Positions 29,525-54,200 of a stretch of 64,000 nucleotides of DNA are shown one piece after another; within the stretch, counting starts at the first letter, position 1, and the number at the start of each line of letters is the position of its first letter. Location: assembly GCA_002269645.1 (NCBI GenBank), contig NIVC01000694.1:186001-250000 (forward strand), written 5' to 3'. This DNA is from Macrostomum lignano (lineage: Eukaryota). A model generated the notes under the pieces. It was given only the letters and a program-made list of their open reading frames with translations, was not told where the DNA came from and did not search any database. The position numbers and the translations under genes are program-made.

Positions 29525-30560
29525 TGTCACGTTGGTGCAGATTGTACTGTGTCAGGCGCCATTCCAACTGTCACTTTGGTGCAGATTGTACTGTGTCAGG
29601 CATCATTCCAACTGTCACGTTGGTGCAGATTGTACTGTGTCAGGCATCATTCCAACTGTCACTTTGGTGCAGATTGTACTGTGTCAGGCATCATTCCAAC
29701 TGTCACGTTGGTGCAGATTGTACTGTGTCAGGCATCATTCCAACTGTCACTTTGGTGCAGATTGTACTGTGTCAGGCATCATTCCAACTGTCACTTTGGT
29801 GCAGATTGTACTGTGTCAGGCATCATTCCAACTGTCACTTTGGTGCAGATTGTACTGTGTCAGGCATCATTCCAACTGTCACTTTGGTGCAGATTGTCTG
29901 TCAGGCATCATTCCAACTGTCACTTTGGTGCAGATTGTACTGTGTCAGGCATCATTCCAACTGTCACTTTGGTGCAGATTGTCTGTCAGGCATCATTCCA
30001 ACTGTCACTTTGGTGCAGATTGTACTGTGTCAGGCATCATTCCAACTGTCACTTTGGTGCAGATTGTACTGTGTCAGGCATCATTCCAACTGTCACTTTG
30101 GTGCAGATTGTCTGTCAGGCATCATTCCAACTGTCACTTTGGTGCAGATTGTACTGTGTCAGGCATCATTCCAACTGTCACTTTGGTGCAGATTGTCTGT
30201 CAGGCATCATTCCAACTGTCACTTTGGTGCAGATTGTACTGTGTCAGGCATCATTCCAACTGTCACTTTGGTGCAGATTGTACTGTGTCAGGCATCATTC
30301 CAACTGTCACGTTGGTGCAGATTGTACTGTGTCAGGCATCATTCCAACTGTCACTTTGGTGCAGATTGTCTGTCAGGCATCATTCCAACTGTCACTTTGG
30401 TGCAGATTGTACTGTGTCAGGCATCATTCCAACTGTCACTTTGGTGCAGATTGTACTGTGTCAGGCATCATTCCAACTGTCACGTTGGTGCAGATTGTAC
30501 TGTGTCAGGCATCATTCCAACTGTCACTTTGGTGCAGATTGTACTGTGTCAGGCGCCATT
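29525..30560. repeat. 44-bp minisatellite with 40-bp variants (tgtcactttggtgcagattgtactgtgtcaggcatcattccaac)
   Basis: About 24 copies; produces three spurious ~375-aa ORFs. Confidence 0.95.
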
Positions 30561-31290
30561 CCTATCCTCACTTTGCTCTTGCGACCGAACGGAGCCCCCG
30601 CGACAATTAATTGATACTGAATATTTATTTATACTGAATGTAGATTTATTGCTTTAGCGATCAACGAACCTTCATAGCATATTTAGGTGGAAATCTACCC
30701 TTAGGCTAAAATTATTTATTTTCATTTCTTCATTTTCTTCATCAAAAGGAATTTCGAAGAGCTAGCGGGCAATTTGTTGAGCTATATTTAACCTCAGCTG
30801 AAGCGCTGAGTGCAGCTGCACTGAAATAGTTCAGGCGAAGGCTGTGAAACGAAGGATTAAAAAAAACGCCTCAAACAGACGAGTGCTAATTGCAATTCCT
30901 AGCAAATTAAAGTCTTGTCAAAAAAGCTCACCAGTCGCATAATTCTCGCTTCTCGCCAAAGAAACGCGTCAAGTCGGGGTGGCCGAATGCGCGCCGAGCA
31001 CAATGAGAAACGCCGCCTTATTGTTCGAATTCGCAATGATGCGATGCTATAATTTATGATCGCTGGTATTGTCTAATAACTTTATGGCCGAATGCAGGTG
31101 TTAAATAACGGCAGCGCAAGGACAGTCAAACAAGCAATAAATCTCTGCTGCGAAAGGCTTTCCATCTAGGGACTACAAAAATGCCACTCTAATTCGCCTA
31201 ATTAATTCAAATTTATGCCGCATCACGACTGTGTTTTTGTAAATAAAAAATGTTAGAAATTTGTTTGCATCATTCATTCAGTAATTTCCG

Positions 31291-31361: not shown

Positions 31362-34300
31362 ATGATGAAGTTCTCGTACTTTTTGCTGATCGCCTTTGCA
31401 ATCGTCGACTTAGGTAAGTTCAGAACCAACTGTATGTCATTGCCAAGGAACTGCTAGTATTGAGCAGCGGATATGCATTGCAGGCAGATGCTTTCCCATT
31501 GTCTGCTGGATACGAACTGGAAGTTCTGACGAGACCTCCAATGGCAGCGGATACTACTGTGGTTATTCACACTGCCACTCCTACACACCAGCTGGGGTGA
31601 GGCCTTGCCTGCTTATTCTGCAAACAAGTCATTTTATATTTTATATTCTGTGGCAACCGCACCTAGGATTTCATGTCCTCTACATGTCCTCTCTATGTAG
31701 ATCCTCTACTCTACAGGCACAGACCCTCTACAGGCACAGATCCTCTATAGGCACAGATCCTCTATAGGCACAGATCCTCTACAGGCACAGATCCTCTATA
31801 GGCACAGATCCTCTACAGGCACAGATCCTCTATAGGCACAGATCCTCTATAGGCACAGATCCTCTACAGGCACAGATCCTCTACAGGCACAGACCCTCTA
31901 CAGGCACAGACCCTCTACAGGCACAGACCCTCTACAGGCACAGATCCACTACAGGCGCAGATCCTCTACAGGCACAGACCCAGCTCAATTATTTCTCCCA
32001 CCTCCGCGCAGCTTCTGCTGCTCCTAGAGCTTCTAGCGGTTTTTTAGCCGTATTTCACCATATTCCATTTTCAACTGCTGGTGTCCAGGTTCGAAGTGAT
32101 TGAATACGCACGTATGGTTAATTACGGTTAAGAATGACTCGACATTTGATTGAATTTGTTAACTTTCAGGAAACGGGAAACTTTGCCGCCTGCGGCAGGT
32201 GCCCCCAGGGTGATCCGACATGCTTGGAATGCACTAAGGACTACTGCAACAACCGGACCTCCTCGACCCTCCGCTGCTACGCCAATAAGTATGACGTCTC
32301 ATCGTCGCCAACTAGCAACGGTGTTTCGTTGGCCTGCACAGCTGGATTCTCTTCGTGCTTCTCGTACACCAAGTTTCCGGCTGACTATTCATCCAACACA
32401 GTAAGACATCCGGGCACTCATTTCCACCGGTAGTTTCTAAGTTCTGAGAGCGAAATAAAAGTTTGCTGAACTTTACGTTAGGCGTAAAACTAGGCGAGAC
32501 GCTATAGTACTCACGGAGCTTCGGTGTGTGTGTGTGTGTGTGTGTGCGTGTGTGTGTGCTATTGGTTAGTGAGTATCTAGAAAGAGATCTTGTAGTTTCT
32601 CGGCTGAAAGCATTTTGGCTGACATCCAATGCGCCCCCCGCCCTGCAGACCTACTTCGGCTGCGGAACCTGCAACCAGACTGAGGACCCGGCCTGCGTGA
32701 ACTGCGGCTCGAACCTGTGCAACACAGCCCTGCCAACACCCTTCAGGTGCTACTATGGCAGGTACAACATCTCGGGTCCCGTTAGCAATGAAACCTCGAT
32801 GACCTGTCAGACTGGAATAACGACCTGTTTCTCGGCAATCATGGTAAATCGCATTTACCTGTCTTCTACCTGCACATGCTTGGATATTGCTTAGCATGCT
32901 AATTCGGATTTTTGGCATTTATGACAGAACATCGACACGCCGCACTACGTGTACGGCTGCGGCAACTGCAGCGCTGACACGATGCCTTCCTGTGCGAAAT
33001 GCAGCTCCGATCTGTGCAACACTGCCGAGATGTCCGCGCTCACCTGCATCCATCGCGACTCCGGGAACAACTCGCAGTCTGTCACTTGCGCCAAGGGAAT
33101 TAGCACATGCTACAGTCTGACTCGATCATTGGTGAGACTTTTGCGCCAAGGGAATTAGCACATGATACAGTCTGACTCGATCATTGGTAAGACATTTGCG
33201 TCAAGGGAATTAGCACATGCTACAGTGTGACTCGATCATTGGTGAGACATTTGCGTCAAGGGAATTAGCACATGCTACAGTGTGACTCGATCATTGGTAA
33301 GACATTTGCGTCAAGGGAATTAGCACATGATACAGTGTGACTCGATCATTGGTAAGACTTTTGCGCCAAGGGAATTAGCACATGATACAGTGTGACTCGA
33401 TCATTGGTAAGACATTTGCGTCAAGGGAATTAGCACATGATACAGTGTGACTCGATCATTGGTAAGACTTTTGCGCCAAGGGAATTAGCACATGATACAG
33501 TGTGACTCGATCATTGGTAAGACATTTGCGTCAAGGGAATTAGCACATGCTACAGTGTGACTCGATCATTGGTAAGACATTTGCGTCAAGGGAATTAGCA
33601 CATGCTACAGTGTGACTCGATCATTGGTAAGACATTTGCGTCAAGGGAATTAGCACATGATACAGTGTGACTCGATCATTGGTAAGACATTTGCGTCAAG
33701 GGAATTAGCACATGATACAGTGTGACTCGATCATTGGTAAGACATTTGCGTCAAGGGAATTAGCACATGATACAGTGTGACTCGATCATTGGTAAGACTT
33801 TTGCGTCAAGGGAATTAGCACATGATACAGTCTGACTCGATCATTGGTAAGACATTTGCGTCAAGGGAATTAGCACATGATACAGTGTGACTCGATCATT
33901 GGTAAGACTTTTGCGCCAAGGGAATTAGCACATGATACAGTGTGACTCGATCATTGGTAAGACATTTGCGTCAAGGGAATTAGCACATGATACAGTCTGA
34001 CTCGATCATTGGTGAGACATTTGCGTCAAGGGAATTAGCACATGCTACAGTGTGACTCGATCATTGGTGAGACATTTGCGTCAAGGGAATTAGCACATGA
34101 TACAGTGTGACTCGATCATTGGTAAGACATTTGCGTCAAGGGAATTAGCACATGATACAGTGTGACTCGATCATTGGTAAGACTTTTGCGCCAAGGGAAT
34201 TAGCACATGATACAGTCTGACTCGATCATTGGTAAGACATTTGCGTCAAGGGAATTAGCACATGCTACAGTGTGACTCGATCATTGGTAAGACATTTGCG

Positions 34301-36821
34301 TCAAGGGAATTAGCACATGCTACAGTGTGACTCGATCATTGGTGAGACTTTTGCGTCAAGGGAATTAGCACATGCTACAGTCTGACTCGATCATTGGTGA
34401 GACTTTTGCGCCAAGGGAATTAGCACATGATACAGTGTGACTCGATCATTGGTAAGACATTTGCGCCAAGGGAATTAGCACATGATACAGTGTGACTCGA
34501 TCATTGGTGAGACTTTTGCGCCAAGGGAATTAGCACATGATACAGTGTGACTCGATCATTGGTGAGACTTTTGCGTCAAGGGAATTAGCACATGATACAG
34601 TGTGACTCGATCATTGGTAAGACATTTGCGCCAAGGGAATTAGCACATGCTACAGTCTGACTCGATCATTGGTGAGACTTTTGCGTCAAGGGAATTAGCA
34701 CATGATACAGTCTGACTCGATCATTGGTAAGACATTTGCGTCAAGGGAATTAGCACATGCTACAGTGTGACTCGATCATTGGTGAGACATTTGCGCCAAG
34801 GGAATTAGCACATGATACAGTGTGACTCGATCATTGGTGAGACATTTGCGCCAAGGGAATTAGCACATGATACAGTCTGACTCGATCATTGGTGAGACAT
34901 TTGCGCCAAGGGAATTAGCACATGATACAGTGTGACTCGATCATTGGTGAGACATTTGCGTCAAGGGAATTAGCACATGCTACAGTGTGACTCGATCATT
35001 GGTGAGACTTTTGCGTCAAGGGAATTAGCACATGCTACAGTGTGACTCGATCATTGGTAAGACATTTGCGCCAAGGGAATTAGCACATGCTACAGTGTGA
35101 CTCGATCATTGGTAAGACATTTGCGCCAAGGGAATTAGCACATGATACAGTCTGACTCGATCATTGGTAAGACATTTGCGTCAAGGGAATTAGCACATGC
35201 TACAGTGTGACTCGATCATTGGTAAGACATTTGCGTCAAGGGAATTAGCACATGCTACAGTGTGACTCGATCATTGGTGAGACTTTTGCGTCAAGGGAAT
35301 TAGCACATGATACAGTGTGACTCGATCATTGGTGAGACTTTTGCGCCAAGGGAATTAGCACATGCTACAGTGTGACTCGATCATTGGTGAGACTTTTGCG
35401 TCAAGGGAATTAGCACATGATACAGTGTGACTCGATCATTGGTAAGACATTTGCGCCAAGGGAATTAGCACATGATACAGTGTGACTCGATCATTGGTGA
35501 GACTTTTGCGCCAAGGGAATTAGCACATGATACAGTGTGACTCGATCATTGGTAAGACATTTGCGCCAAGGGAATTAGCACATGCTACAGTGTGACTCGA
35601 TCATTGGTGAGACTTTTGCGTCAAGGGAATTAGCACATGATACAGTGTGACTCGATCATTGGTGAGACTTTTGCGCCAAGGGAATTAGCACATGATACAG
35701 TGTGACTCGATCATTGGTGAGACATTTGCGCCAAGGGAATTAGCACATGATACAGTGTGACTCGATCATTGGTGAGACTTTTGCGCCAAGGGAATTAGCA
35801 CATGCTACAGTGTGACTCGATCATTGGTAAGACATTTGCGCCGAGGGAATTAGCACATGATACAGTGTGACTCGATCATTGGTGTGACTTTTGCGTCAAG
35901 GGAATTAGCACATGATACAGTGTGACTCGATCATTGGTGAGACTTTTGCGTCAAGGGAATTAGCACATGATACAGTGTGACTCGATCATTGGTGAGACTT
36001 TTGCGCCAAGGGAATTAGCACATGATACAGTGTGACTCGATCATTGGTAAGACATTTGCGCCAAGGGAATTAGCACATGATACAGTGTGACTCGATCATT
36101 GGTGAGACATTTGCGTCAAGGGAATTAGCACATGATACAGTCTGACTCGATCATTGGTAAGACATTTGCGCCAAGGGAATTAGCACATGCTACAGTCTGA
36201 CTCGATCATTGGTAAGACATTTGCGCCGAGGGAATTAGCACATGATACAGTGTGACTCGATCATTGGTGTGACTTTTGCGTCAAGGGAATTAGCACATGA
36301 TACAGTGTGACTCGATCATTGGTGAGACTTTTGCGTCAAGGGAATTAGCACATGATACAGTCTGACTCGATCATTGGTGAGACTTTTGCGTCAAGGGAAT
36401 TAGCACATGATACAGTGTGACTCGATCATTGGTGTGACTTTTGCGTCAAGGGAATTAGCACATGATACAGTCTGACTCGATCATTGGTACGACATTTGCG
36501 CTCAACTTTGCGCCAATTTTCTTGACAGTTCTAAGCAAGCAAATTTTACTACAGGGAACTGTTGCCGGCAAAGACATCATTCCCCTCAGCGGGTGCGGCG
36601 CGTGCACCCCAAGAACAGCTGCACTCTATGGCTGCACCTCCTGCAGCACCAGCGACTGCAACGGTCCGCAATCAACAACAACACCGGCCACAACCACCAC
36701 CAGCAGTCGTGCAGCCACCACGACAGGGTCCAATGCCAGCGTCCGTAGCGCGCCGAGTCCGTCAGCCCCTTTCGGCGTGGCTGTCGCTCTGCTCTTGCTG
36801 AGCTTCACAAGCAAGTTCTGA
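31362..36821 (+). CDS. Secreted/GPI-anchored protein with four Cys-rich Ly6/uPAR (three-finger)-like repeats, ~353 aa
   Basis: Exons 31362-31413, 31484-31596, 32170-32400, 32649-32843, 32928-33131, 36555-36821; all GT-AG and in phase. Signal peptide MMKFSYFLLIAFAIVDL; four repeats C-x(n)-C-x5-6-C-(F/Y/H)S...(G/A)CGxC..CxxC-x4-CN; Thr/Ser stalk; hydrophobic GPI-type tail PFGVAVALLLLSFTSKF. Confidence 0.88.
31710..31980. repeat. 17-bp minisatellite (caggcacagatcctcta) in intron 2
   Basis: About 16 copies. Confidence 0.92.
32525..32557. repeat. (TG)n microsatellite in intron 3
   Basis: Visible (tg) run with one interruption. Confidence 0.9.
33088..36490 (+). repeat. 55-bp tandem array (62 copies) made of the 3' end of exon 5 plus its splice donor
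   Basis: Unit gcgccaagggaattagcacatgctacagtctgactcgatcattg|gtgagactttt; the first copy is the coding exon end; the array fills intron 5. Confidence 0.97.
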
Positions 36822-39202: not shown

Positions 39203-42200
39203 CTAGTCGGTCAGGCAGGTCGAGCTGTCCTTCGGCTTGGCCGAATGCTCGCTGCGGTTACTGCCGAGGCGGTTGCGCACAGCCATGTAGGTGGGGAACT
39301 GGATGATTTTCGTGATGGGGTTCACCTCGAAGATCGGTTCGTTGGTCCAAATCTGCTGCTGAAAATTGCGAAAATTATTATCAATTATTATTATTATCAA
39401 AGTATCGGCAGAACTACCAGTAGCCGTGACTCACATCCTGGTTCTCGCGTCGCCATTTCAGCACGGCTTCATCCTCACCGAACCTGCTCGAGCACGAGAT
39501 GATGTAGCAGTCGCCCCGGTAGCCCGGCCTGAAATTTTGTGAGAATTTATTGCGACAGTTAGGGCCCATGTTCTAGTCACTAGAGCCCCACTCTCTACTC
39601 ACTTGGTCAAGATGAGGCATTTTATCGGCGACTCTGACACTTTGTTTCTGACCGTCAGCATCAGGTTGTAGTCGTACGGCTGGTCCTGATTCACGATGTT
39701 CTCGAATGGCTGCAGCGCAGTGGCATTGGAGCTGGCGGCAGTCAGGAACGGTGACGGCCGAGACGGCTGCGATCCCGGAGTCTCCGTCTCCTCGGCGGAG
39801 GCGAAGCATTCGTACGGGGACTGCTGCACTGCTGCGGCGGCCTGGCCCGAGACTGGGCTGGATGGCTCCGGCGTCACCACTGTCGCTTCGGCTGCAACAG
39901 CGGCGGCGCCTTGCGGTGCGGCGACTCGTCCGTCCATTCGGCTGGCCGAATCCGAGTCTTTGGCGTCTTCGAAAACATTGTCGCTCTCTTCGTCGGTAGT
40001 AATGCTCCTGTGGTCTGTAGCATCCTGTCGACGGGGTCCTGGGTGCTCTGCTGCCATCATGGCTGGGTCGGTGAGTGTTGCCTTGTCCTGCACCTCCACT
40101 CGCGTGTTCTCTGCGCCCATCTGCAAGAAGATCTCCAGGTGGAAGGCGTCCCTTTCAACGATTTCGTCGTCTAGACGCAAGTCGAGCACTTTCGGGTCTT
40201 CGGTGTCGTGCTGGCTCTTGCGCACCATTATCTGCTTTCGGTGGTTGCTCAGCGTCTGGCAGCTGCGGGACATGCGATGCACCCGCGGGGCCAAGCGCGT
40301 GTGAGCCGGTGAGTTGTAGGGAGACGCCCTGGGTGTCGACTCGTCCGATGCCTCCTTCTTCAGCACCGCCTTGGTGAGCGGCTGGTCTATTGCGCTGAGG
40401 TACTTCTCAACCTTCTCCTTGACGGTCGACCTGGTCATGAGTGTGTCCGGACGCTTGGCGGACGCTTGGTTCTTCAAAGCGTCAGAGTGGTTGGAGGAAA
40501 CCCTCTTCTTGCTGATGTAGGAGACGGTGAACACAACAAGGTCACCGCTGCCGGTGCCAACCCACAGTGAATCCTCGAACGGCAGGATGGAAGTAATGCG
40601 CCAAGGATTGAACAGCGTCTCGTCGTCCTTGCGGAAAATCGGATATTTGAGTTCCTTAACGTCGTACAGCAGACAGCAGGTAAGCGTGTCCTCATCCCAT
40701 AGTTCGATCACGGACGAGCCGCGGACGGCGATCCAGATGCCGAACCGGCTGCGCTTGAGGCATAGGATGGAGTCGAACGGGTTGTTGGACACGTGGAATT
40801 TCTCCTTTGGATCGAGGCACTCGGCGTCCAGCAGCTGTACGTAGTTGCCGCACGCGACCCACAGGTCCGTGTTGACCAGCAGTAGCGAGGTCAGAGGTGA
40901 CGTGCTGAGATTCACGTAGAAGATATTGTTGTTGGGCTCCTCGTGTCCGACGTGGTCCAGCACGGCCACTGAGCCGTTTGCCAGAGCCGCGAAGACGCGG
41001 TTGGCGATTCGGTCGGAGGCGGCGCTGGCGCAGATGTCCAGCACGGAGTCGTGGATGCGGCACTGCCACAGGCGCTCTCTGCAGGCCCGTTGAGTAGCGA
41101 AATTTGATTAATAGCGATAAATTCTTATGAACAAATTGATACTGAAATAGGTAAAACGCATCAGCAGCCAGCTTACTCAGCCTCCGTATCGAATGCGATG
41201 ATGTACATGTTGAGCGTCCCGAGCAGCACAACGCTGGCGTCCAGAGCGCACACGCACATCACGCGAGAGTCAATCTGGGAATCGAACAGGTAAAAAGTGC
41301 ATGGCGGAGAGTTGCTTTTGTGATATCAGCATGAAGCAAGTGAAGGGTGATGAACACGCACCTCCTCTCGCAGGTTGTACATGAGATTCTCTTCCGGCTG
41401 CAGCTTGCAGATCCTGGTGCGGTTCTGGTCTCCGTAGCAGATCCAGGTGTTGCCGTCTAGAAAGGAGCCGCCGCACTCGATGATTGGCCGGTCGACACTG
41501 CGGGTCTCCATCTCCCGAAACTGAAATGGCGATTAGGGCAGGGCTCTGGTTTAAGACTGGCTGGGCGCACTTAGCATCGCTCTCTGCAACGTTTGGAGCG
41601 TTTGACTCGCACAGAACCGGCTGTATTGCTGCCAGTCAGCGAATGCTGAAAATTTTAATCCTAAAAGCATTCATATTGAAACGGCAAAGCAAGCTTTCAT
41701 TACTCGATAAGGCTCGTAAGAAAAAACGAATTCAATTTCGGAATCAAGGAAAAAGCATGTACACTAGAAACGCACAAATCCTACCAAAACCAATGAGTGT
41801 AAAAGATGAGAAAACAAATTCACCAAAAATGGCAAAGCATTCTATTGGCACCGCACTCTTCTATTGCTTGGAGTTGCTTTGCTACTTGCCGTTCGGTGAG
41901 AGAGTCGGCGAATGCTTTCGTAGGCCATGGTGGCCCGGACAGTGAAATTCCTCATGGGCGAGCTTTGCAGTCTTTGGTCCTGCAAAATTGGCACAGGGCG
42001 GGGCGCCGCGGGCTGCTCTGCTTGCTTGGAACTGAAGGCTTCGGGCGTTCGAGAAAACACTCGGGTCGCTGACGTCAGCACTAATAGTACGCGAATAGGC
42101 TACTTGGAGCACGACGACATTGCTTAGTGAGATATGATTATTACCAGAGGCCGCAAAAAGAGTAAACTAAAGGGAGTAAGCCAGACAGACAACAGAACGG

Positions 42201-45200
42201 GGCCTCTCTACACAGCTGGTTTTGCTTACTACCCGACTCCATGCAACTTGGTTAGTGTAGATTTGGGATAAGGCTTAGCAATCCACTACGAGTGCTGGTG
42301 CTCCAATCGCACTTATTCGTGCAAGCATAGACAGTGCACGCATTTGAAAGAGGCAGATGGTGCAGCGTAGCAAATATTGCCGGGTCGGGAGGTTAGCAAT
42401 GGGTAAATTCGAACTCAGAGCTGGCGGTGCGCAGTGGGTGTGATTTAATTGCACTCACGCGCTCCTCTGTGTCGTTGTACGCCTTGCGCTTCTTCTTGCG
42501 CCGCTCGTCCTGCTCAATTAGCGAGTTGATGAAGCAGCTCTGCTTCACGCTGATGTCCTTCCTGTGAGCCATGCCAGGCAGCTCCTCAAACGCGGCCCTT
42601 GCCAAGCCCTCAACATCGAATGTGAGCTTCGCTGCCGCCTTCAAGTGCTTCCACACGCTGATGGTGTCAGTCTGCTGCAGCAGGATTTTCTCGTGCAACT
42701 TCAGGATGCCGAGGGTGAAGCGGAACAAGACCTTCGGGCCCTCCAGCAGGAAGCAGTCCCAGATGCGCAGCAGCGCGGGGAAGGGGACGGCGTCGAAGAA
42801 CACGGCCAGGAACCAGTTGAGCGTCACCGTGGAGATGTCAATCTCCAGCTCCTCCAGGTGTCTGTGCAGCTCAGGCAGGTGCGACTTCAGCAGGTCCTTC
42901 AGAACTAGCTGGTCCGCCTGCGCCCCGATGAGATTGGAAGTGAAGTAGAGCGGGTGGAAGTAGGCCTCTGTGATGGCTACCAGCAGCCAGAAGGTGTCCT
43001 CCTTGCTGAGGAAGAGCAGGCCCATGCCGGCGAGGAAGTTCATGCCCTGGCAGTAGCCGATGGCCGGGTTGTGGATGCAGAAGGCCTGCAGAATCTCCTG
43101 CAGCTTCTGGATCTAAAAGCGAAGGATTTAAAACACTGATTACTTTCTGACAGACTCAAATGGCACTGCCATGAACCAGTGGCTCCACTGACCCCCTCCG
43201 AGTCGTTCGAGTCGAACTGTATGTTGGTTGGCATCGTGCGTAGCAGGTCCAGCGAGATCTGCTTGCGGTGCATGCCGGCCACCTCCGAGTCGTGAATCTG
43301 CTGCGTCAGCGTGGTGTAGTAGTGCCGGCCCTTCACCGCCCGGATTTCCTGGATGTGCGAGTGCACCAGCTCTCGCCACACTGCGGATCGGAACATCCTT
43401 GGAATGCCGTTGCGCACCAGGCCCTTCAGCTCCTTCTGCAGTCAGGAAGGTTGGGACAGGAGTCTCGGATCAGTCTGGGTGAGCTGTTATTTCTTAATCT
43501 ACCCTAGATGGCCTAAGAGAGTGGATGTTACAGCTGAAGCTGATTTAAGTACACCGGGAAACTGTTATACACAAGCGTTGAGAAACTTTGGTCTTTTGTA
43601 AAAGTCTTCCGAAAGGTAGGGACTGAAAATATCTGTTTGGCTTAGCATTGCAGCATTACCGTCTTGGTGTAGCTCCTGCAGGTTGAGATGAAGGTCTTCC
43701 ACTGTCGCTGGTGCTGCTCCCACCTGTCCAGCAGAGAGGTGTAGTGCTCGTGCAGCTGCCTGCAGATGTAGTGCAGCAGCAGCGACTCGTTCTCGTGGCT
43801 GTGCTTGAAGCCGAAGCTGTCCACGTGGCACTCGGATGCGGTGAGGCTACAGAGGCATGCAGTTACAGAAGGTTGAAGCACTTTTTAATTTTTAACTAGA
43901 GCCCCAGGGAGCAGCACCGATCTCAGTCGGTCGCTGCAGTGACTCAGAGTCCCAGGCACGCGGCTGTAGCAACTCACCTCTCAAAGGTGGGCAGACGTGG
44001 GTTCACGGTGCGAGCGTCCTCGAGCAGCTCAGTCAGCCGCTCCCGGTGCTGAAGTGGCCACGGGGAACAGGAAGGGGATTTGAGATTTCGTCTTAGGGAA
44101 TGACGAGCTCGGCTGCAATGTGAAACTATTTGGTCTCGAAGCAGACTGGAATTCTGCAGCGCTAAGGAATACCGGGGTTAAACAAAAACTTTCAATCTTT
44201 CTTGAGTTGAGCGTTGCTGAAATTCAATCCCACTCAATCCCATTAAACCCAGGGTAGAAAGCGTGGAAATTCAATGAAAAAATTTGTTTAGCTGCGCCAA
44301 ATAAGTCCGTTCTAAAAACACTGAAGTGGACACTCTCGGGAGAGTTCGGTGTGAAATTTTTCAGGAAAAATGACTTCAGATTCATCTGATTGACAGCGGA
44401 AGAAGGCTCACTCACCCGGTGTCCGCCGTGGACATTCAGCTCGAAGCCGTCCGACACGTCTCCAGTGGGCACGGTGATGCAGGACTGCAGCAGGAACAGG
44501 TAGTCCCGCTTCCAGTTCTCAATCTCCAGCTTCTGCTCGCGGTAGATTCTGAAATTGACCGCTGCTACTTCTTGCCAAAAGCGAACATAAATTAGAAGCA
44601 AAATTAGCAAATTGTAAATTTTTGCGTGCCGCTAACCGATCCTGGTTTTTAAACTTCTCCAGCTCCATCTGGCGCAGGTTGGTCAGCTTCTTGACCTCGT
44701 TGTTCAAAAAGCGGTTGTTGTTTTGCAGGATGCGGCATTGCTCCTCCAGCTGCTTGAGGTCTGCGGACTTGGCTGTCATCCAGTCACGCATAGCACTGCG
44801 ATGTGGAGTTGGTGGAGGCCAGCGCCTTGATTGGGTTTACTGGATTTTGTGTCGGGGACACATTGGGCTGAGAGTTTCAGAGAGGCAAAAAATATGGGAA
44901 AAATTGGGAGAGGACACACTAGACAGTGGTAGGACATGCTGGACAGCGGTAGGACATGCTGGACAGTGGTAGGACATGCTGGACAGTGCTAGGACATGCT
45001 GGACAGTGCTAGGACATGCTGGACAGTGGTAGGACATGCTGGACAGTGGTAGGACATGCTGGACAGTGCTAGGACATGCTGGACAGTGCTAGGACATGCT
45101 GGACAGTGCTAGGACATGCTGGACAGTGGTAGGACATGCTGGACAGTGGTGGGACATGCTAGACAGTGAGTAATCAGACGCAGATTTCATGCTGCTGATG

Positions 45201-48200
45201 AGCACTGGAAAGCGCCAGCTCAGGTCAAAGTTGCAGCAGGTCAAGGTGTTACAGCACATCACGGGCGCCACTTACGATTCAGACTTGAAGCTCGGCAGAG
45301 CCGTTGATCGATTTCGCATCGTTCTGAAATTGATGGACGAAATTAATGGTCAAGAAAGCCTCCACAGAAACTTTGTACTTAGGAAATGTAGGTTCGGTGC
45401 GGGTGCACTTTTATAAAAAAAGCGGTGGCGAGTACAAAATTGGCAAGAAACTACATGCACAATAGAACATGGCATCTGCAGGTGCTTCAGCAAGTTGTTA
45501 AAACAATGGGGTTAATTATTGAACTGTCGCTATTCGATAAAAGTCAAGCATTCAGCCCTCAGACTGAATGGTCTGACCGGCACCGCCACCCACAGGAAAG
45601 CAGCGAGTGTTCCACGTCACCAAGGAACCGCCACCGGGTCGGAGACAGTAAGCTGTTATTCAGGGAGGCGCGAGTTAAGGACCCCGAAAATTTTCAAGGG
45701 CGTATTTTGGAGGAAACTGTTTCCGAGGAAGTTTTTCGCCTCTGCTTCCGAATTTTGCTGCTGGCGGAAAGTACCGAAAGATTCTGAAGCCGGCATCCAG
45801 GTGAAAGTTTGGCGAAATTTCCGCCGAGCGGGAGCGCTCGAAGTAGCGCAGGTATTGATAGATTGGCAGCTTGCTGATGACGCTCCGCTCCCACAGGTGC
45901 GGCTGCGGGACGGCGGAGTCCGCACCTGCGGCGGCGGTGGCGGCGGCTCCGCCCGGCTTCTCCCGAGGCTTCTCAGCTTCGGCCTCAGCGGGACCAGCAG
46001 CGGCGGAGTCGGCAGCGCTAGAACAGCAAACAACCGGCGGAGCGAGCGTGGAAGAGGCGCCCATTGTGCGGCTTCAGCTCTAACTGTCTATCAAGTGTGG
46101 CCGAGAACGGGAGCAGAGAGAGAGGCGCGGGGGGGGGGGGGAGGCGCCCCGGCCTCTCAAACACAGCAAAAATCGGCATGCAATTCACAGACTGGGGAGG
46201 CTGCACAGCAGCTGGGTGCGATAGCGGCATCAGAACTGGCTAAACAGGCTGCTAGCATGGGTGAACAGGTGAGAAACACAAAAAAGGAAAATCGGTAAGG
46301 AAAGGCGATTACCCCTTCTCCTGGTGCTCAGATTCAAGATGCTCTAACCTGCTGAGCTTCATGTCCAGCTCTGCAATCTGCGCATCGCGCTTTTTCAGCA
46401 CCTCCTTGAGCGCCGTGTCCCGATTCATCAGCTCGGCCAGCTCCTTCTTGCACTTTCTGCGGAGCCACAGGCGGAAGAGGAATGAAAGCATCAGTGAATA
46501 TGAGCCTCAGAATACATAGTCCCAGAGTCTCATAGTCCCAGAGTCTCATAGTCCCAGAGTCTCATAGTCCCAGAGTCTCATAGTCCCAGAGTCTCATAGT
46601 CCCAGAGTCTCATAGTCCCAGAGTCTCATAGTCCCAGAGTCTCATAGTCCCAGAGTCTCATAGTCCCAGAGTCTCATAGTCCCAGAGTCTCATAGTCCCA
46701 GAGTCTCATAGTCCCAGAGTCTCATAGTCCCAGAGTCTCATAGTCCCAGAGTCTCATAGTCCCAGAGTCTCATAGTCCTAGAGTCTCATAGTCCCAGAGT
46801 CTCATAGTCCCAGAGTCTCATAGTCTCAGAGTCTCATAGTCCCAGAGTCTCATAGTCCCAGAGTCTCATAGTCCCAGAGTCTCATAGTCCCAGAGTCTCA
46901 TAGTCCCAGAGTCTCACAGTCCCAGAGTCTCATAGTCCCAGATTCTCGCAGTCCCAGAATCTCATAGTCCTAGATTCTCATAGTCCCATAGTCTCATAGT
47001 CCTAGAGTCCCATAGTCCCAGAATCTCATAGTCCTAGATTCTCATAGTCCCATAGTCTCATAGTCCTAGAGTCCCATAGTCCCAGAATCTCATAGTCCTA
47101 GATTCTCATAGTCCCATAGTCTCATAGTCCTAGAGTCCCATAGTCCCAGAGTCTCATAGTCCCAGAGTCGTATACAATATATCTCGGAATAGTATTACCG
47201 AATTGTAATTTGTTTTAAAAATTTCGAATAGTTACGTGGTGAACTTCTTCGATTATAAATTATAAATTATCAGCAATAAAGTAAGATTAACTTGGCCTCA
47301 TAGTACCTGCGACTCATATTATAATTGATAAGATATAATAAATAAATCGAAAATCTCTCACAAAAAAAGAGCCGCAGGGCGAGCACTCACATGAGCTCCT
47401 GCTCCAGGTCGTGCACCCGGTTACTGGGGTCCAGCAGCGAGTCGTCCGACTGAGAGCTGCTGAAGTTAAAAGGGTTGAGAAGGGACGGCCCAAGCCAATG
47501 AGATTCGCAATGAGATCCTTAACGAGATTCTTAATAAGATTCATAATGAGACTCCCAATGAGATTCTTAATGGGATTCCCAATGAGATTCCCTATGAGAT
47601 TCTCAATAAGATTTGCAATTAGATTTGTAATGTGTTTTCCAATGAGATTCTTGAGATTCCCAATGAGATTCCCAATGAGATTCTTAATAAGGTTTGCAAT
47701 TAGATTTGTAATGTGTTTTCCAATGAGATTCTTGAGATTCCCAATGAGATTCCCAATGAGATTCTCAATAAGATTTGAAATGAGATTCCCAATCAGATTC
47801 CCAATCAGATTCCCAATGAGATTCCTAATGAGATTCCCAATCAGATTCCCAATGAGATTCCCAATGAGATTCTCAATAAGATTTGCAATTAGATTTGTAA
47901 CGTGTTTTCCAATGAGATTCTTGAGATTCCCAATGAGATTCCCAATGAGATTCCCAATGAGATTCTCAATAAGTTTTGCAATTAGATTTGTAATGTGTTT
48001 TCCAATGAGATTCTTGAGATTCCCAATGAGATTCCCAATGAGATTCTCAATAAGGTTTGCAATTAGATTTGTAATGTGTTTTCCAATGAGATTCTTGAGA
48101 TTCCCAATGAGATTCCCAATGAGATTCTTAATAAGGTTTGCAATTAGATTTGTAATGTGTTTTCCAATGAGATTCTTGAGATTCCCAATGAGATTCCCAA

Positions 48201-51200
48201 TGAGATTCTCAATAAGATTTGAAATGAGATTCCCAATCAGATTCCCAATCAGATTCCCAATGAGATTCCTAATGAGATTCCCAATGAGATTCCCAATGAG
48301 ATTCCCAATGAGATTCCCAATGAGATTCCCAATGAGATTCCTAATGAGATTTGCAATGAGATTCCCAATGAGATTCCCAATGAGATTCCCAATGAGATTC
48401 CCAATTAGATTCCCAATGAGATTCCCAATGAGATTCCCAATGAGATTTGCAATGAGATTCCCAATGAGATTTACAATGAGATTCCTAATGAGATTTCCAA
48501 TGAGATTTACAATGAGACTCCTAATGAGATTTGCAATGAGATTCCCAATGAGATTCCCAATGAGATTCCCAATGAGATTCCCAATGAGATTCCCAATCAG
48601 ATTCCCAATCAGATTCCCAATCAGATTCCCAATGAGATTCCGAATGAGATTTACAATGAGATTCCCAATGAGATTCCCAATGAGATTCCCAATGAGATTC
48701 CCAATCAGATTTCCAATCAGATTCCCAATCAGATTCCCAATCAGATTTCCAATCAGATTCCCAATCAGATTCCCAATCAGATTTCCAATCAGATTCCCAA
48801 TCAGATTCCCAATCAGATTTCCAATCAGATTCCCAATCAGATTCCCAATCAGATTCCCAATCAGATTCCCAATCAGATTCTCAATAAGATTCCCAATGAG
48901 ATTCCTAATGAGATTTACAATGAGATTCCCAATGAGATTTGCAATGAGATTCCCAATGAGATTTGCAATACCAGCGCGCCAGTCGCGCACTCGTTGCACC
49001 CAAAACAGCAGCGCAATCAAATTTCAAAACTCTCAGCTGTGCGGCTGCCACCAGGCGGAGCTGCCTGGCAGCTCCCAGGGACCTGCAGGGCTCAGGAACG
49101 CTGGGGGCCCAACCGCCTCACGGATAGCTTTAGCTTTAGAGACGGAAAAGAAGCGTTGGGAAGACAGCCGCGTCTGCTGCTCAATAGTCAGACGCAGAAC
49201 AAATTTCTGCTTGTGCAAACAACTGCGTCAGTGCAGGTCTGGCTGAATTCTGCACTGCAGTGCCGAGGCACTCCTGCTGTCTGCAGACGGCTGAGCCAGT
49301 TCCTGGACAAGCGAATCTGCCCCCTACCGGAGGGAATTACTCAGTAAACTTTGGAGAAATCGGCTTTGGGAAAGCGGCTTTGCAAGTCCCTGATTTCCTG
49401 TCAGATTTGTCTGCGGGGAGGGGCACTGACAGGGGGCTCTCGCAGGTCAGAGGGGGCACTGACAGGGGGCTCTCGCAGGTAAGAGGGGGCACTGACAGGG
49501 GGCTCTCGCAGGTCAGAGGGGGGCACTGACAGGGGGCTCTCGCAGGTCAGAGGGGGCACTGACAGGGGGCTCCCGCAGGTCAGAGGGGGGCACTAACAGG
49601 GGGCTCCCGCAGGTCAGAGGGGGGCACTGACAGGGGGCTCCCGCAGGTCAGAGGGGGGCACTGACAGGGGGCTCCCGCAGGTCAGAGGGGGCACTGACAG
49701 GGGGCTCCCGCAGGTCAGAGGGGGCACTGACAGGGGGCTCCCGCAGGTCAGAGGGGGCACTGACAGGGGGCTCCCGCAGGTCAGAGGGGGCACTGACAGG
49801 GGGCTCCCGCAGGTCAGAGGGGGCACTAACAGGGGGCTCCCGCAGGTCAGAGGGGGGCACTGACAGGGGGCTCCCGCAGGTCAGAGGGGGCACTGACAGG
49901 GGGCTCCCGCAGGTCAGAGGGGGGCACTGACAGGGGGCTTCGGCAGGTCAGAGGGGGGCACTGACAGGGGGCTCCCGCAGGTCAGAGGGGGGCACTGACA
50001 GGGGGCTCCCGCAGGTCAGAGGGGGGCACTGACAAAGGGCTCCCGCAGCAAATCAGTACTAACAGCAAGTTCCTGACGTCCTTGTTGCTGCTGTCGATCC
50101 CGGAGTCCTCGCTGCGCGGCTTCCCGCTGCCGCCGTTGGCCCCAGCCTGGAGGACCGGAGCGCCACCGCTGCCGCTGCCGCCGCCAGCGTAGGCGGCGCG
50201 CCGCTTTGGCGACTCGTCCACCAGACTGTCGTAGTTGAAGGCCTCAGTGTCAGAGCCGCCGGATTCCTCATCGTCGAGGTCCTCATCGTCGTCGAGGCCG
50301 CCAGACCGACGGCCGCCGCCGGTGCGGGCGACGCCGCTGGTGAAGCTCTGCGAAAGCGACAGGCCGAGGCGGCTGCCAAAGCCTGCGGCGGCGTCCTGCA
50401 CCTTGCGGATGACGGGCGGCACCCCGTTGCTTCCGGAGTGGTCTGCGGGGATGCGGGGATGGGAGCCGCCTGTAGCAGCGGCTGGCTGCAGGGTGCGGAG
50501 AGGCCAGAGCCATGGCATCTAAATTTGATCTAGATTTGATTTGATTTGTTTCCGGCTCATCTCAACTGCTTCACATCTGCTTCCAGTGAAAGCATTACTT
50601 TGTGTTGACAAATTGATACTTTCCCATCTCGGCAGGGAACTTTCTAAGAAACAGTTTGTGTTGACAAATTGATACTTTCCCATCTCGGCAGGGAACTTTC
50701 TAAGAAACAGTTTGTGTTGACAAATTGATACTTTCCCATCTCGGCAGGGAACTTTCTAAGAAACAGTTTGTGTTGACAAATTGATACTTTCCCATCTCGG
50801 CAGGGAACTTTCTAAGAAACAGTTTGTGTTGACAAATTGATACTTTCCCATCTCGGCAGGGAACTTTCTAAGAAACAGTTTGTGTTGACAAATTGATACT
50901 TTCCCATCTCGGCAGGGAACTTTCTAAGAAACAGTTTGTGTTGACAAATTGATACTTTCCCATCTCGGCAGGGAACTTTCTAAGAAACAGTTTGTGTTGA
51001 CAAATTGATACTTTCCCATCTCGGCAGGGAACTTTCTAAGAAACAGTTTGTGTTGACAAATTGATACTTTCCCATCTCGGCAGGGAACTTTCTAAGAAAC
51101 AGTTTGTGTTGACAAATTGATACTTTCCCATCTCGGCAGGGAACTTTCTAAGAAACAGTTTGTGTTGACAAATTGATACTTTCCCATCTCGGCAGGGAAC

Positions 51201-54200
51201 TTTCTAAGAAACAGTTTGTGTTGACAAATTGACACTTTCCCATCTCGGCAGGGAACTTTTCTAAGAAACAGGGCGGTCCTTCTCATAAAGTCGTCTCCGG
51301 CTCTGCAATCGCGAGTGAGGCTCGCCGTAAAAAGCTTCAAAAGCTCTTGAACTAATTAATTGGTCTCAAATACAACAAGTTTCTCATCGCTAATATTTGA
51401 AGCCGTGTGGGATTGCGAAAGCGGAACCGAATGCTCAACGGGTGTCGTCTCAGAAATCCTCATTTCCTGTCCAACTCAGGCAGGGGAATCAGCCAGCAAC
51501 CGGCTCAGCCAAATCCGCCTTAGTCAGTAGATTTTGCACTTCTAGCGGCGATCGTGTTGCTAAAAATAGCCTAGCACAGCATGCAAGCCGAATTAAGTTG
51601 AATAAAAGCACAGCAAACCAAAAGTAAGAAAGAGAGTAAGTTTTATGATCAAAGAGTTGGCGCGTGCAATCAACGGATTAATCGGGCACACGTGGGCGAC
51701 AATGTGCAGAGCTGAGCACGAAAGCTGCTCAACTCTTCAATTGATGATGGGAGGCCCAGCGCGCGGAAGGTGGGGCTCGGCTGGTTCAATGCTTTGGCCT
51801 AATTGGTTCATCAAGACTGCGGCTCTGTCCTGCTGTACAGGGGACAGGTGCGACCCCGCCAGCCCTCTGCCTCGTTGTCTGCCCGACAAAAGCTGAGATC
51901 GCCCCCCTCTTTTCCTTTTTGAGACTTTGGGCTGGCAGGGCAAAAGCTGGCTTGTTTACGCCGCGGAACAGATCGACTCCCTGCTCAGCCCTGCTTCCCC
52001 ACCCCCCTCTCTGCACTTTTTTATGACGGTCTTCGCCCTTCCACGTCCTTCCTAATCCTTTCTTTTCTTTTCCCATGCGAGCCGTCCTTCAGCGCGCAAG
52101 TTGAGCGCTTTGGGTGCGGGGTTGAGCAGTGAGCAAACAGGGGGGGGGCTGCTATGAAAGCCAAAACCAGCTTTGGGGCTCGCAGAGCAATCAGGACAGT
52201 CGGACACATTCGGGGGCAGGCAGAGCAATCAGGACAGTCGGACACATTCGGGGGCAGGCAGAACAATCAGGACAGTCAGACACATTCGGGGGGGGGGGCA
52301 GGCAGAGCAATCAGGACAGTCGGACACATTCGGGGGCAGGCAGAGCAATCAGGACAGTCGGACACATTTGAAGGGCAGGCAGAGCAATCAGGACAGTCGG
52401 ACACATTTGGAGGGCAGGCAGAGCAATCAGGACAGTCGGACACATTCGGGGGCAGGCAGAGCAATCAGGACAGTCGGACACATTCGGGGGGCAGGCAGAG
52501 CAATCAGGACAGTCGGACACATTTGAAGGGCAGGCAGAGCAATCAGGACAGTCGGACACATTTGGAGGGCAGGCAGAGCAATCAGGACAGTCGGACACAT
52601 TCGGGGGGGGGCAGGCAGAGCAATCAGGACAGTCGGACACATTCGGGGGCAGGCAGAGCAATCAGGACAGTCGGACACATTTGGAGGGCAGGCAGAGCAA
52701 TCAGGACAGTCGGACACATTCGGGGGATCAGGACAGTCGGACACATTTGGAGGGCAGGCAGAGCAATCAGGACAGTCGGACACATTCGGGGGGGGGCAGG
52801 CAGAGCAATCAGGACAGTCGGACACATTCGGGGGGGGGGGGGGCAGGCAGAGCAATCAGGACAGTCGGACACATTCGGGGGCAGGCAGAGCAATCAGGAC
52901 AGTCGGACACATTCGGGGGCAGGCAGAGCAATCAGGACAGTCGGACACATTTGGAGGGCAGGCAGAGCAATCAGGACAGTCGGACACATTCGGGGGCAGG
53001 CAGAGCAATCAGGACAGTCGGACACATTTGGAGGGCAGGCAGAGCAATCAGGACAGTCGGACACATTCGGGGGGGGGCAGGCAGAGCAATCAGGACAGTC
53101 GGACACATTCGGGGGCAGGCAGAGCAATCAGGACAGTCGGACACATTTGGAGGGCAGGCAGAGCAATCAGGACAGTCGGACACATTCGGGGGGGGGGGGG
53201 CAGGCAGAGCAATCAGGACAGTCGGACACATTCGGGGGGGGCAGGATTTTGGGGCTTTCAGCGCTGCTGCTCACCGCTGGCCGGGAAGCTTGACAGACTG
53301 TGCGAGACGCCCAGGTGGCCGCTGCCGCCCGACAAGCCGAGGTCAACTGAGGGCACGCCGGCTGCAGAGTCGGGTTGAGGGGGGGGAGGTGGCCCGGGGA
53401 TCAGGCGAATTCGGCAGCTCTTGAAATCCCCATCAGCCCCCAAGTCAAGCTCGCTGATCGGCACGCACCAAAGTGCCGTCACCTCATCGGCGGAGAAAAT
53501 TAGCAGAGTAATTATTTTAATTGCTTCCCGCCACCTCACGAAGTCCCTAACACACTGATAACAGCCGCCACCTCAAAAGCCAATGCAATCTCAGTAATTC
53601 ATTGCAGCCTCCACCGTGTTGACAAAGAAAGATTTGACAGCCGCAGCACACTTGCCAGTCAGCGGCTCCGGGCTGGGAGGGCTCGACGACAGCCCGACGG
53701 CCCCGGCAACTTCCGGCAGGAACTCGCAGTCAACCCAGTCTTTAGTGACTTCCGGTTTGAGTGCGGGCGGGAATTCGATCGTGTAAAAAAGGACAAAAAG
53801 CTCATAAAGCCAGAAGAAGCTCTGGCAAGATGATTCCCCCTTCGTACCCCCCTGTGTTTCACTCAGCATTTCTTTGGCTGGTTGAATCCAATCGGATGGA
53901 TGAAGTTGTTAAAGATTTCCAAAAGCATTTCCTGAAACTTTAATTTGACAACTCGAGTCTTTCATCCCGGATACGTGCTTCAGAAGCTGGACTGGATAAA
54001 ATTCACACTGCAAAATTTAAAAGCGTTTCTAAGAAATCCCGCTAACAATTTTCGGGTTTAATGCATTGTAACAAAGCAATTTGAATGCGCCTGATTCAAA
54101 CTGACTGCAGAGACTCACTCTCGTCTTCCTCCTCGATGGCGGACCGGGTCATCATCGAGGAGGTCTGGTCCAGGGTGCTCATCCGCGGCATTCGCCGACC

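Follow-up and report, generated by a model that had tools for sequence, protein, structure and literature searches.

The TBC-domain proteins closest to the one studied here are TBC1D2A (Armus), TBC1D2B and the nematode TBC-2, with which it has in common an N-terminal PH domain, a central region and a dual-finger TBC domain (PMC5739090). Published descriptions of vertebrate TBC1D2/2B and of C. elegans TBC-2 have these proteins end with the TBC domain (PMC5739090). The Macrostomum lignano protein does not end there, as about 690 residues, including a propeller, lie C-terminal to its TBC domain. The propellers of ARHGEF10/10L/17, LRRK1/LRRK2 and JIP3/JIP4 pass the same protein profiles as this one (PF19056 WD40_2 and PF23748 Beta-prop_LRRK2). 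In those proteins the propeller follows a RhoGEF, a kinase or RH1/LZII coiled coils, whereas in M. lignano it follows a RabGAP. The M. lignano propeller is about 18-30% identical to them and differs by a large disordered insert before the last blade.

Gene model

The window, i.e., the whole analysed stretch of 64,000 nucleotides, comes from M. lignano contig NIVC01000694.1, and the locus is 100% identical to window positions 59970-37203. We conclude, with a probability of about 0.93, that it holds one ordinary protein-coding gene, Mlig002084.g5 (57970-39203, minus strand), whose 22 exons encode a predicted Rab GTPase-activating protein of 1619 aa. The gene model is already known, being deposited in GenBank and UniProt. 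The features are the following:

39203-57970, minus strand: whole coding sequence, BOX15_Mlig002084g5 (PAA78340.1, 1619 aa), 22 exons; the exon-by-exon rebuild translates exactly to the deposited protein
57433-57949, minus strand: PH domain, aa 8-104, exons 1-3 (Pfam PF00169, 1.6e-12; homologous N-termini)
42681-43393, minus strand: RabGAP-TBC domain in exons 15-16, matched by Pfam over aa 645-855 (PF00566, 2.2e-54)
42459-43112, minus strand: exon 16, the last TBC exon, ending in phase 0 at the donor GAGCGC|gtgagt
41890-41979, minus strand: exon 17 of 30 codons in the non-conserved linker, with phase 0 at either end and followed by a GC-AG intron
40496-41493, minus strand: predicted N-terminal part of the propeller with blades 1 to about 6, encoded by exons 18-20 (aa 969-1239; PF23748 and PF19056 exceed their gathering scores)
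39701-40468, minus strand: predicted disordered insert, aa 1249-1504, about 255 aa, within exon 20 (pLDDT below 50)
39266-39688, minus strand: predicted C-terminal part of the propeller, aa 1509-1599, closing strands, end of exon 20 and exons 21-22 (pLDDT about 90; 5-6 strands)

Twenty introns are of the GT-AG type, and those after exons 6 and 17 are GC-AG. A preliminary description, made from the raw sequence, had traced the 3' part of this gene as the last TBC exon joined in phase to six further exons. The donor at 42459 and the phases are as it described, the acceptors are canonical, and the donor of exon 41979-41890 is a GC (ACG|gcaagt) rather than a GT. The resulting chain (43112-42459, 41979-41890, 41520-41362, 41274-41177, 41078-39603, 39528-39435 and 39358-39203) is in frame. 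Its product of 908 aa is the exact C-terminal suffix of PAA78340.1 (UniProt A0A267FWY1). The peptides quoted from it are also present in the translation: DSVLDI (41050-41033) and stretches of 12 (40996-40961), 18 (40897-40844), 16 (40741-40694) and 19 residues (40600-40544). The chain, including its GC-AG intron, equals the RNA-based GenBank annotation exactly. The latter was obtained from genome-guided RNA-seq and transcriptome assembly (PMC5730564). UniProt names the protein 'TBC1 domain family member 2B'.

Domain organisation

In the protein the PH domain is followed by a long middle region of helical or low-complexity character, the TBC domain, a short variable linker with the optional exon of 30 codons, and a predicted seven-bladed propeller. 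The presence of a PH, putative coiled-coil, TBC and propeller architecture in a single reading frame, as first proposed, is borne out by the exon phases, the Pfam matches and the rebuilt coding sequence. The central region, of putative coiled-coil type, aligns with the matching region of homologues. PF00566 scored 184.8 bits on the full protein and 151.5 bits on its C-terminal half alone (Pfam gathering cut-off 25.2). The TBC domain carries an arginine finger, ISLDLLR (IxxDxxR, aa 690-696, 43258-43238), and a glutamine finger in GYCQGMNF (43058-43035), where GYCQG is aa 730-734 (YxQ). In the alignment of homologues the YxQ columns are invariant and those of IxxDxxR are at least 90% conserved. 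The spliced 908-aa product matched RabGAP-TBC (3e-44), Beta-prop_LRRK2 (6e-19) and WD40_2 (2e-16).

The C-terminal residues, for which profile searches and structure prediction had been suggested, passed the family HMMs and were modelled as a propeller. PF23748 scored 67-69 bits (cut-off 26.9) and PF19056 58-60 bits (cut-off 22.5). AlphaFold modelled about 28 strands and gave each of the two propeller parts a pLDDT of about 90 or higher, and the C-terminus is thus predicted to form a closed seven-bladed beta-propeller. At the site of the disordered insert, homologues also have inserts, which are not conserved and vary in length, and the sequence around the junction of exons 21 and 22 is conserved from Hydra to Branchiostoma.

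The propeller had initially been likened to those of JIP3/JIP4 and ARHGEF10/17. This kinship stands, since the nearest non-TBC relatives include both types, but it must be extended to the LRRK type, which scores at least as well as WD40_2 (PF23748 and the WD40 domain of LRRK2 in the PDB). The latter was the top PDB match by phmmer and by Foldseek (Foldseek E 6e-14). All of the 30 long non-TBC matches, hand-picked below the TBC-linked ones in an exhaustive HMMER search, had one of three architectures: RhoGEF+PH_19+WD40_2 (24), LRR-Roc-COR-kinase (4) or RH1+JIP_LZII (2).

Distribution among animals

Homologues were retrieved with an insert-free query, while the whole 690-aa C-terminus gave none. 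Our reading is that, with the longer query, low-complexity words of the disordered insert filled up the word-seeded list of candidates. The tblastn matches of the homologues run collinear with the exons of the window. The same collinear PH-TBC-propeller architecture was found in non-bilaterians (the sponge Dysidea and the cnidarians Hydra, Oculina and Rhopilema), spiralians (flatworms: Fasciola and Schistosoma; annelids: Dimorphilus and Owenia; molluscs: Magallana; a brachiopod: Lingula; rotifers: Rotaria), ecdysozoans (nematodes: C. elegans NP_510336.3; chelicerates: Centruroides; myriapods: Strigamia) and deuterostomes (echinoderms: Strongylocentrotus; a hemichordate: Glandiceps; amphioxus: Branchiostoma). 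The architecture was checked with Pfam in seven representatives of the 64-member alignment. One 4459-nt RNA-type contig carries PH, TBC and propeller in an uninterrupted ORF of 1125 aa. No vertebrate or insect member was found among the matches of the word-seeded searches.

Members of the family include C. elegans NP_510336.3 (UniProt G5EEB5, 1333 aa), Branchiostoma belcheri Bbelb_041100, Strongylocentrotus 'TBC1D2B-like isoform X2' and Dysidea avara 'TBC1D2B-like'. With the M. lignano protein they have in common collinear PH, TBC and PF23748/PF19056 matches, a variable insert and a conserved last blade. They are 30-45% identical to it, and their inserts are about 90 to about 450 aa long. The domain-architecture survey therefore leaves no room for the novelty first attributed to this protein: the design is common and annotated in invertebrates. 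Of the two origins then considered, the ancestral form holds, as the architecture extends from a sponge to amphioxus.

We considered whether the nematode propeller gene is tbc-2, as no second Caenorhabditis paralogue was present among the homology matches. We take NP_510336.3 to be on chromosome X and tbc-2 to be ZK1248.10 on chromosome II, so they were treated as separate genes. The accession turned up nothing useful in the literature.

Relationship to TBC1D2 and TBC1D2B

We placed the TBC domain with a neighbour-joining tree of 315 columns, which has SGSM3 and fungal outgroups and no vertebrate sequences. The propeller-bearing proteins formed a clade with moderate bootstrap support (83/100) and the propeller-less TBC1D2B-like proteins another (100/100). 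Closest to the M. lignano domain is that of a second Macrostomum paralogue, and trematode sequences lie beside this pair. On this TBC tree, the sister group of the propeller family consists of the TBC1D2B-like genes that lack a propeller. The position of Mlig002084.g5 outside the TBC1D2B-like clade is provisional, as the tree holds no vertebrate sequence.

One could instead regard the gene as a direct orthologue of vertebrate TBC1D2A/2B, from which vertebrates simply trimmed off the propeller. The automatic names in NCBI and UniProt suggest this, as does the clustering of the TBC domains of both groups against SGSM3 and the fungal outgroups (77/100). Yet each of Branchiostoma, Patiria and Glandiceps has, besides a gene with the propeller, a distinct TBC1D2B-like gene that lacks it, and the two types fall in separate clades. 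We therefore consider direct orthology unlikely. The coexistence of the two genes and their separate clades, on a tree without vertebrate sequences, suggest that an entire sister paralogue was lost in vertebrates, rather than that TBC1D2/2B was trimmed.

Integrity and origin of the gene

A less probable alternative is that the locus produces two mRNAs, i.e., that the TBC gene ends at a stop in the retained intron and that the propeller exons form a separate, possibly SL trans-spliced, transcript, the fusion being an artefact. The stop reported in the preliminary description does exist (42395-42393), and there are in-frame Met codons in exons 17 and 18. Many M. lignano genes are trans-spliced, and about 7% of the transcripts that were assembled are multi-gene precursors (PMC5730564). 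Automatic models of this family are split elsewhere, e.g., Oedothorax JTE90_016460/016458 and a pair in Ixodes hexagonus. However, the annotation pipeline cuts genes at the trans-splice and poly(A) sites that experiments had revealed (PMC5730564), and in three gene copies it still did not part the TBC exons from those of the propeller, but kept them in a single mRNA (deposited proteins of 1589/1619 aa). The fused ORF is found in more than ten phyla, including on the intron-free transcript-type contig. The phase 0 to phase 0 joins hold with or without exon 17, and only about 10 residues of exon 18 precede the first strand of the propeller, which lacks its own conserved start. The assignment of Mlig002084.g5 to a single mRNA is based on the published pipeline and on this conservation, and we regard two separate mRNAs as very improbable. 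A minor intron-retaining isoform stopping at 42393 may nevertheless exist alongside the full-length product.

A fusion specific to flatworms or spiralians, in which a TBC1D2 gene captured a JIP3/ARHGEF10-type propeller, would fit the descriptions of vertebrate TBC1D2/2B and C. elegans TBC-2 as TBC-ended (PMC5739090), but this second origin first considered can be dismissed given that the architecture, along with a conserved C-terminal blade, is spread over a sponge, cnidarians, ecdysozoans, spiralians and deuterostomes, and given the single TBC clade of the propeller-bearers.

Possible function

The design of the protein is ordinary and annotated in databases; what remains is a family that apparently is functionally unstudied. 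We found no functional study of any PH-TBC-propeller member in the literature, and searches combining TBC1D2 with WD40 or propeller, and others for the Pfam and InterPro identifiers, returned no description of the architecture. Neither a paper on the evolution of the TBC family, which makes no mention of WD40, nor a review of TBC-2/Armus (PMC5739090) mentions a propeller-bearing RabGAP.

By analogy with the literature on TBC1D2, TBC-2 and Armus, the PH domain and the middle region would recruit the protein to endosomal membranes marked by phosphoinositides, where the TBC domain would use the dual-finger mechanism to inactivate an endosomal Rab. Judging from the partners of related propellers, the propeller might be a docking or regulatory platform that sets where or when the GAP acts. 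We infer the substrate Rab, the membrane targeting and the propeller partners from such relatives, and the Rab5/Rab7 specificity of TBC1D2A, TBC1D2B and TBC-2 is not simply transferable to the propeller-bearing gene.

A broader reading is possible, if somewhat doubtful as a whole: that this is a functionally unstudied RabGAP paralogue present throughout the sampled animal phyla, sister to TBC1D2/2B, which vertebrates and probably also insects and crustaceans have lost, and that its propeller, otherwise common only to ARHGEF10/17, LRRK1/2 and JIP3/4, is a common docking module. If so, a Rab GAP, Rho GEFs, a Rab kinase and motor adaptors would all be linked through this module to one endolysosomal or cytoskeletal platform, and both C. 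elegans NP_510336.3 and M. lignano Mlig002084 would give ready access for genetics. The locus points to a conserved RabGAP with a propeller of the LRRK2/JIP/ARHGEF10 class in most invertebrate phyla, C. elegans included. The family could offer an independent, genetically tractable context for questions on the binding of the LRRK2 and JIP3/4 propellers.

Probable cassette exon and sister copies

The sister copies g1 and g3 differ from g5 by 8 and 14 residues, respectively, and both lack the 30 residues of exon 17. We considered that this exon (41979-41890) might be spurious, as it has a GC donor, shows no conservation and keeps the frame when skipped. We rejected this because the g5 protein (PAA78340.1) includes it. 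The homologue alignment contains no counterpart of it in other phyla. The exon is skipped in g1 (PAA68857.1) and g3 (PAA93776.1), and at the g3 locus the exon and its splice sites are 99% conserved despite the skipping. Since it is intact where it is skipped and included in g5, exon 17 is probably a cassette exon.

Gene model and transcripts

The TBC gene of the window (BOX15_Mlig002084g5, here g5) occupies positions 57970-39203. Its exons discussed here are:

53656-53748, minus strand, exon 6, with donor gcaagt, followed by the second GC-AG intron
43112-42459, minus strand, last TBC exon, ending at donor GAGCGC/gtgagt
41979-41890, minus strand, exon 17, 30 codons, phase 0 on both flanks
41520-41362, 41274-41177, 41078-39603, 39528-39435 and 39358-39203, minus strand, remaining exons after the TBC exon

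The preliminary description had proposed that the donor at 42459 is followed by six more exons in exact phase, and the spliced translation of the window confirmed this chain. The seven-exon join from 43112 to 39203 is open over 908 codons, all phases fit, all acceptors are canonical, and the only unusual splice site is the GC donor after 41890 (ACG/gcaagt). The peptides quoted at the time were all located where expected in the translation.

The 908-residue chain is an exact C-terminal suffix of the GenBank protein PAA78340.1, and the complete protein could be rebuilt from 22 exons of the window; the introns that follow exons 6 and 17 are GC-AG. The two models are therefore identical, and this exact one was deposited in GenBank with the M. 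lignano annotation of 2017. Both GC-AG introns have the GCAAGT consensus.

The annotation of this assembly is not ab initio: it combines a genome-guided RNA-seq transcriptome (StringTie, TACO) with a de novo transcriptome (PMC5730564). Reading through the intron after 42459 leads to a stop at 42395-42393, as had been noted before (at 42393), and a minor isoform may retain this intron. That the TBC and propeller exons form two separate mRNAs finds no support, since the TBONE pipeline, which used trans-splice sites of the spliced leader and poly(A) sites, both observed experimentally, to divide transcripts into genes (PMC5730564), kept them as a single gene in all three annotated copies.

Gene copies and exon 17

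With the propeller as query, an exhaustive HMMER search retrieved a protein 100% identical across it, whose 90% cluster consists of three M. lignano GenBank proteins, all with the UniProt entry name "TBC1 domain family member 2B":

PAA93776.1, gene g3, 1589 aa
PAA68857.1, gene g1, 1589 aa
PAA78340.1, gene g5, 1619 aa

The g5 locus (NIVC01000694.1:223203-245970, assembly GCA_002269645.1) is 100% identical to window positions 59970-37203, and the gene itself corresponds to 57970-39203. The assembly thus has at least three near-identical copies, with 8-14 amino-acid differences, which is consistent with the duplicated karyotype of M. lignano. The g3 locus, on NIVC01000020.1, matches the window with 92-98% identity over the main matching blocks. 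A further partial protein of M. lignano (P0001, 738 aa) reaches from the TBC domain to the first blades of the propeller with just 57% identity, and therefore represents a second, older paralogue.

Exon 17 is included in g5 but left out of g1 and g3; at the g3 locus, the exon and both its splice sites nevertheless show 99% conservation. The linker in which it lies shows no conservation between phyla. From these sequence comparisons we read exon 17 as a cassette exon. Given its phase 0 on either side, the fusion of TBC and propeller is independent of it.

Domains and fold

The spliced 908-residue product matched RabGAP-TBC (Pfam, 3e-44) and, C-terminal of it, Beta-prop_LRRK2 (PF23748, 6e-19) and WD40_2 (PF19056, 2e-16), all above the gathering score. 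Both catalytic fingers of the TBC domain are retained, the arginine in ISLDLLR and the glutamine in GYCQG. The exons upstream encode a PH domain and then a long middle region; homologues align collinearly on the window from the PH domain (~57970) to the propeller (~40500).

In the AlphaFold model, run with a 64-sequence alignment, residues 969-1239 and 1509-1599 mostly have pLDDT above 90 and residues 1249-1504 are disordered; its ~28 strands predict seven blades. Conservation of the closing strands, which come from the last stretch of exon 20 and from exons 21-22, extends from Hydra to Branchiostoma and spans the exon 21/22 junction. The only relatives of solved structure found by sequence were the WD40 domains of LRRK2 (E 4e-6 over 250 residues), and Foldseek placed LRRK2 first and LRRK1 next (E 6e-14), with generic WD40 proteins behind.

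The exhaustive search with the propeller gave just 263 cluster representatives at E ≤ 1e-3. We chose 30 long proteins from the matches ranking under the TBC-linked ones, mostly matched over part of the propeller, and scanned them with Pfam: 24 were of the ARHGEF10/17 type (RhoGEF, PH_19, WD40_2), four of the LRRK type (LRR-Roc-COR-kinase) and two of the JIP3/4 type (RH1, JIP_LZII). This bears out the class that the preliminary description had assigned (JIP3/4 and ARHGEF10/17), and adds LRRK to it.

The protein combines a PH domain with a TBC domain whose two fingers are intact and with a complete propeller of the ARHGEF10/17-LRRK-JIP3/4 class, into which a long disordered stretch is inserted. 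Relatives act on Rab5 and Rab7 (PMC5739090), and the protein would be an active GAP on an endosomal Rab. The PH domain and the middle region might provide recruitment, and the propeller docking or regulation.

Distribution across animals and relation to TBC1D2

Word-seeded searches with two queries (the TBC and propeller of the window, and a Caenorhabditis member) returned homologues with this PH-TBC-propeller architecture in the groups listed below, to which Nemertea is added as a candidate from a propeller match; seven of the homologues were scanned with Pfam and confirmed to have the architecture.

Homologues with PH-TBC-propeller architecture (Nemertea: candidate)
Porifera: Dysidea
Cnidaria: Hydra, Oculina, Acropora, Rhopilema
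Platyhelminthes: Fasciola, Schistosoma, Calicophoron, Heterobilharzia, Trichobilharzia
Annelida: Dimorphilus, Owenia, Capitella
Mollusca: Magallana, Crassostrea, Pinctada, Dreissena, Gigantopelta
Brachiopoda: Lingula
Nemertea: Tubulanus (candidate, matched by the propeller alone)
Rotifera
Nematoda: Brugia, Pristionchus, several Caenorhabditis including C. elegans (NP_510336.3)
Chelicerata and Myriapoda
Echinodermata
Hemichordata: Glandiceps
Cephalochordata: Branchiostoma belcheri

A 4459-nt contig of run ERR13148255, a transcript-type assembly, contains an unbroken ORF of 1125 aa with PH, TBC and propeller, flanked by UTRs. No vertebrate, insect or crustacean protein of the PH-TBC-propeller architecture was among the matches of the word-seeded searches, which is suggestive of its absence from these groups. 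The fusion had been proposed to be either lineage-specific or ancestral; its presence from sponge to cephalochordate favours the ancestral form and argues against the lineage-specific one. The preliminary description had said that its novelty would be removed if the architecture were already common and annotated in invertebrates; this is the case, and this very gene model is itself a deposited one.

Several automatic annotations of arthropods split the gene into adjacent "TBC1D2B" and "LRRK2 beta-propeller domain-containing" models, e.g., JTE90_016460/JTE90_016458 in Oedothorax and a pair on a single contig in Ixodes hexagonus. One Trichinella model joins it to a pseudouridylate synthase.

In a tree built by neighbour joining from 315 columns of the TBC domain, with SGSM3 and fungal outgroups, the propeller-bearing proteins formed one clade (bootstrap 83/100) and the propeller-less "TBC1D2B-like" proteins another (100/100); the two grouped together against the outgroups (77/100). 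Both kinds occur, as one gene each, in Branchiostoma, Patiria and Glandiceps. The separate clades and this coexistence in three genera therefore indicate, on present evidence, that the window gene is TBC1D2-like but a probable sister paralogue, not an orthologue, of vertebrate TBC1D2A/2B. It falls outside the published description of the TBC1D2 family, i.e., PH, coiled coil and C-terminal TBC (PMC5739090). A study of TBC evolution assigned TBC1D2A/B to the clade TBC-X and nowhere mentions WD40 (PMC3655817). The PH-TBC-propeller family seems to have been neither studied nor discussed before, and the remaining, mild interest of the gene lies there.

Neighbouring features

Other features of the window include:

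23876-27859, plus strand, putative LTR-retrotransposon gag-pol, unbroken ORF of 1327 aa
13325-14335, minus strand, large exon with a RasGEF (Cdc25-type) catalytic domain (PF00617, 3.8e-45)
33086-36505, 47495-48963, 52175-53238 and 29525-30562, examples of minisatellite arrays

The gag-pol ORF encodes reverse transcriptase, RNase H, integrase zinc-binding and integrase core domains, a Ty3/gypsy-like order, and sits in a block of high GC content (0.62-0.64) between AT-rich stretches. The RasGEF exon is part of a gene that neighbours the TBC gene and shares its strand, with further exons possibly down to ~3650; a Pfam scan of two downstream ORFs, candidate parts of this gene, gave no matches. The window has around 30 minisatellite arrays, with periods of 12-129 nt, up to 124 copies and one array of 3.4 kb, an abundance that fits the highly repetitive genome of M. 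lignano. Nine of them are in introns of the TBC gene (44911-56350).
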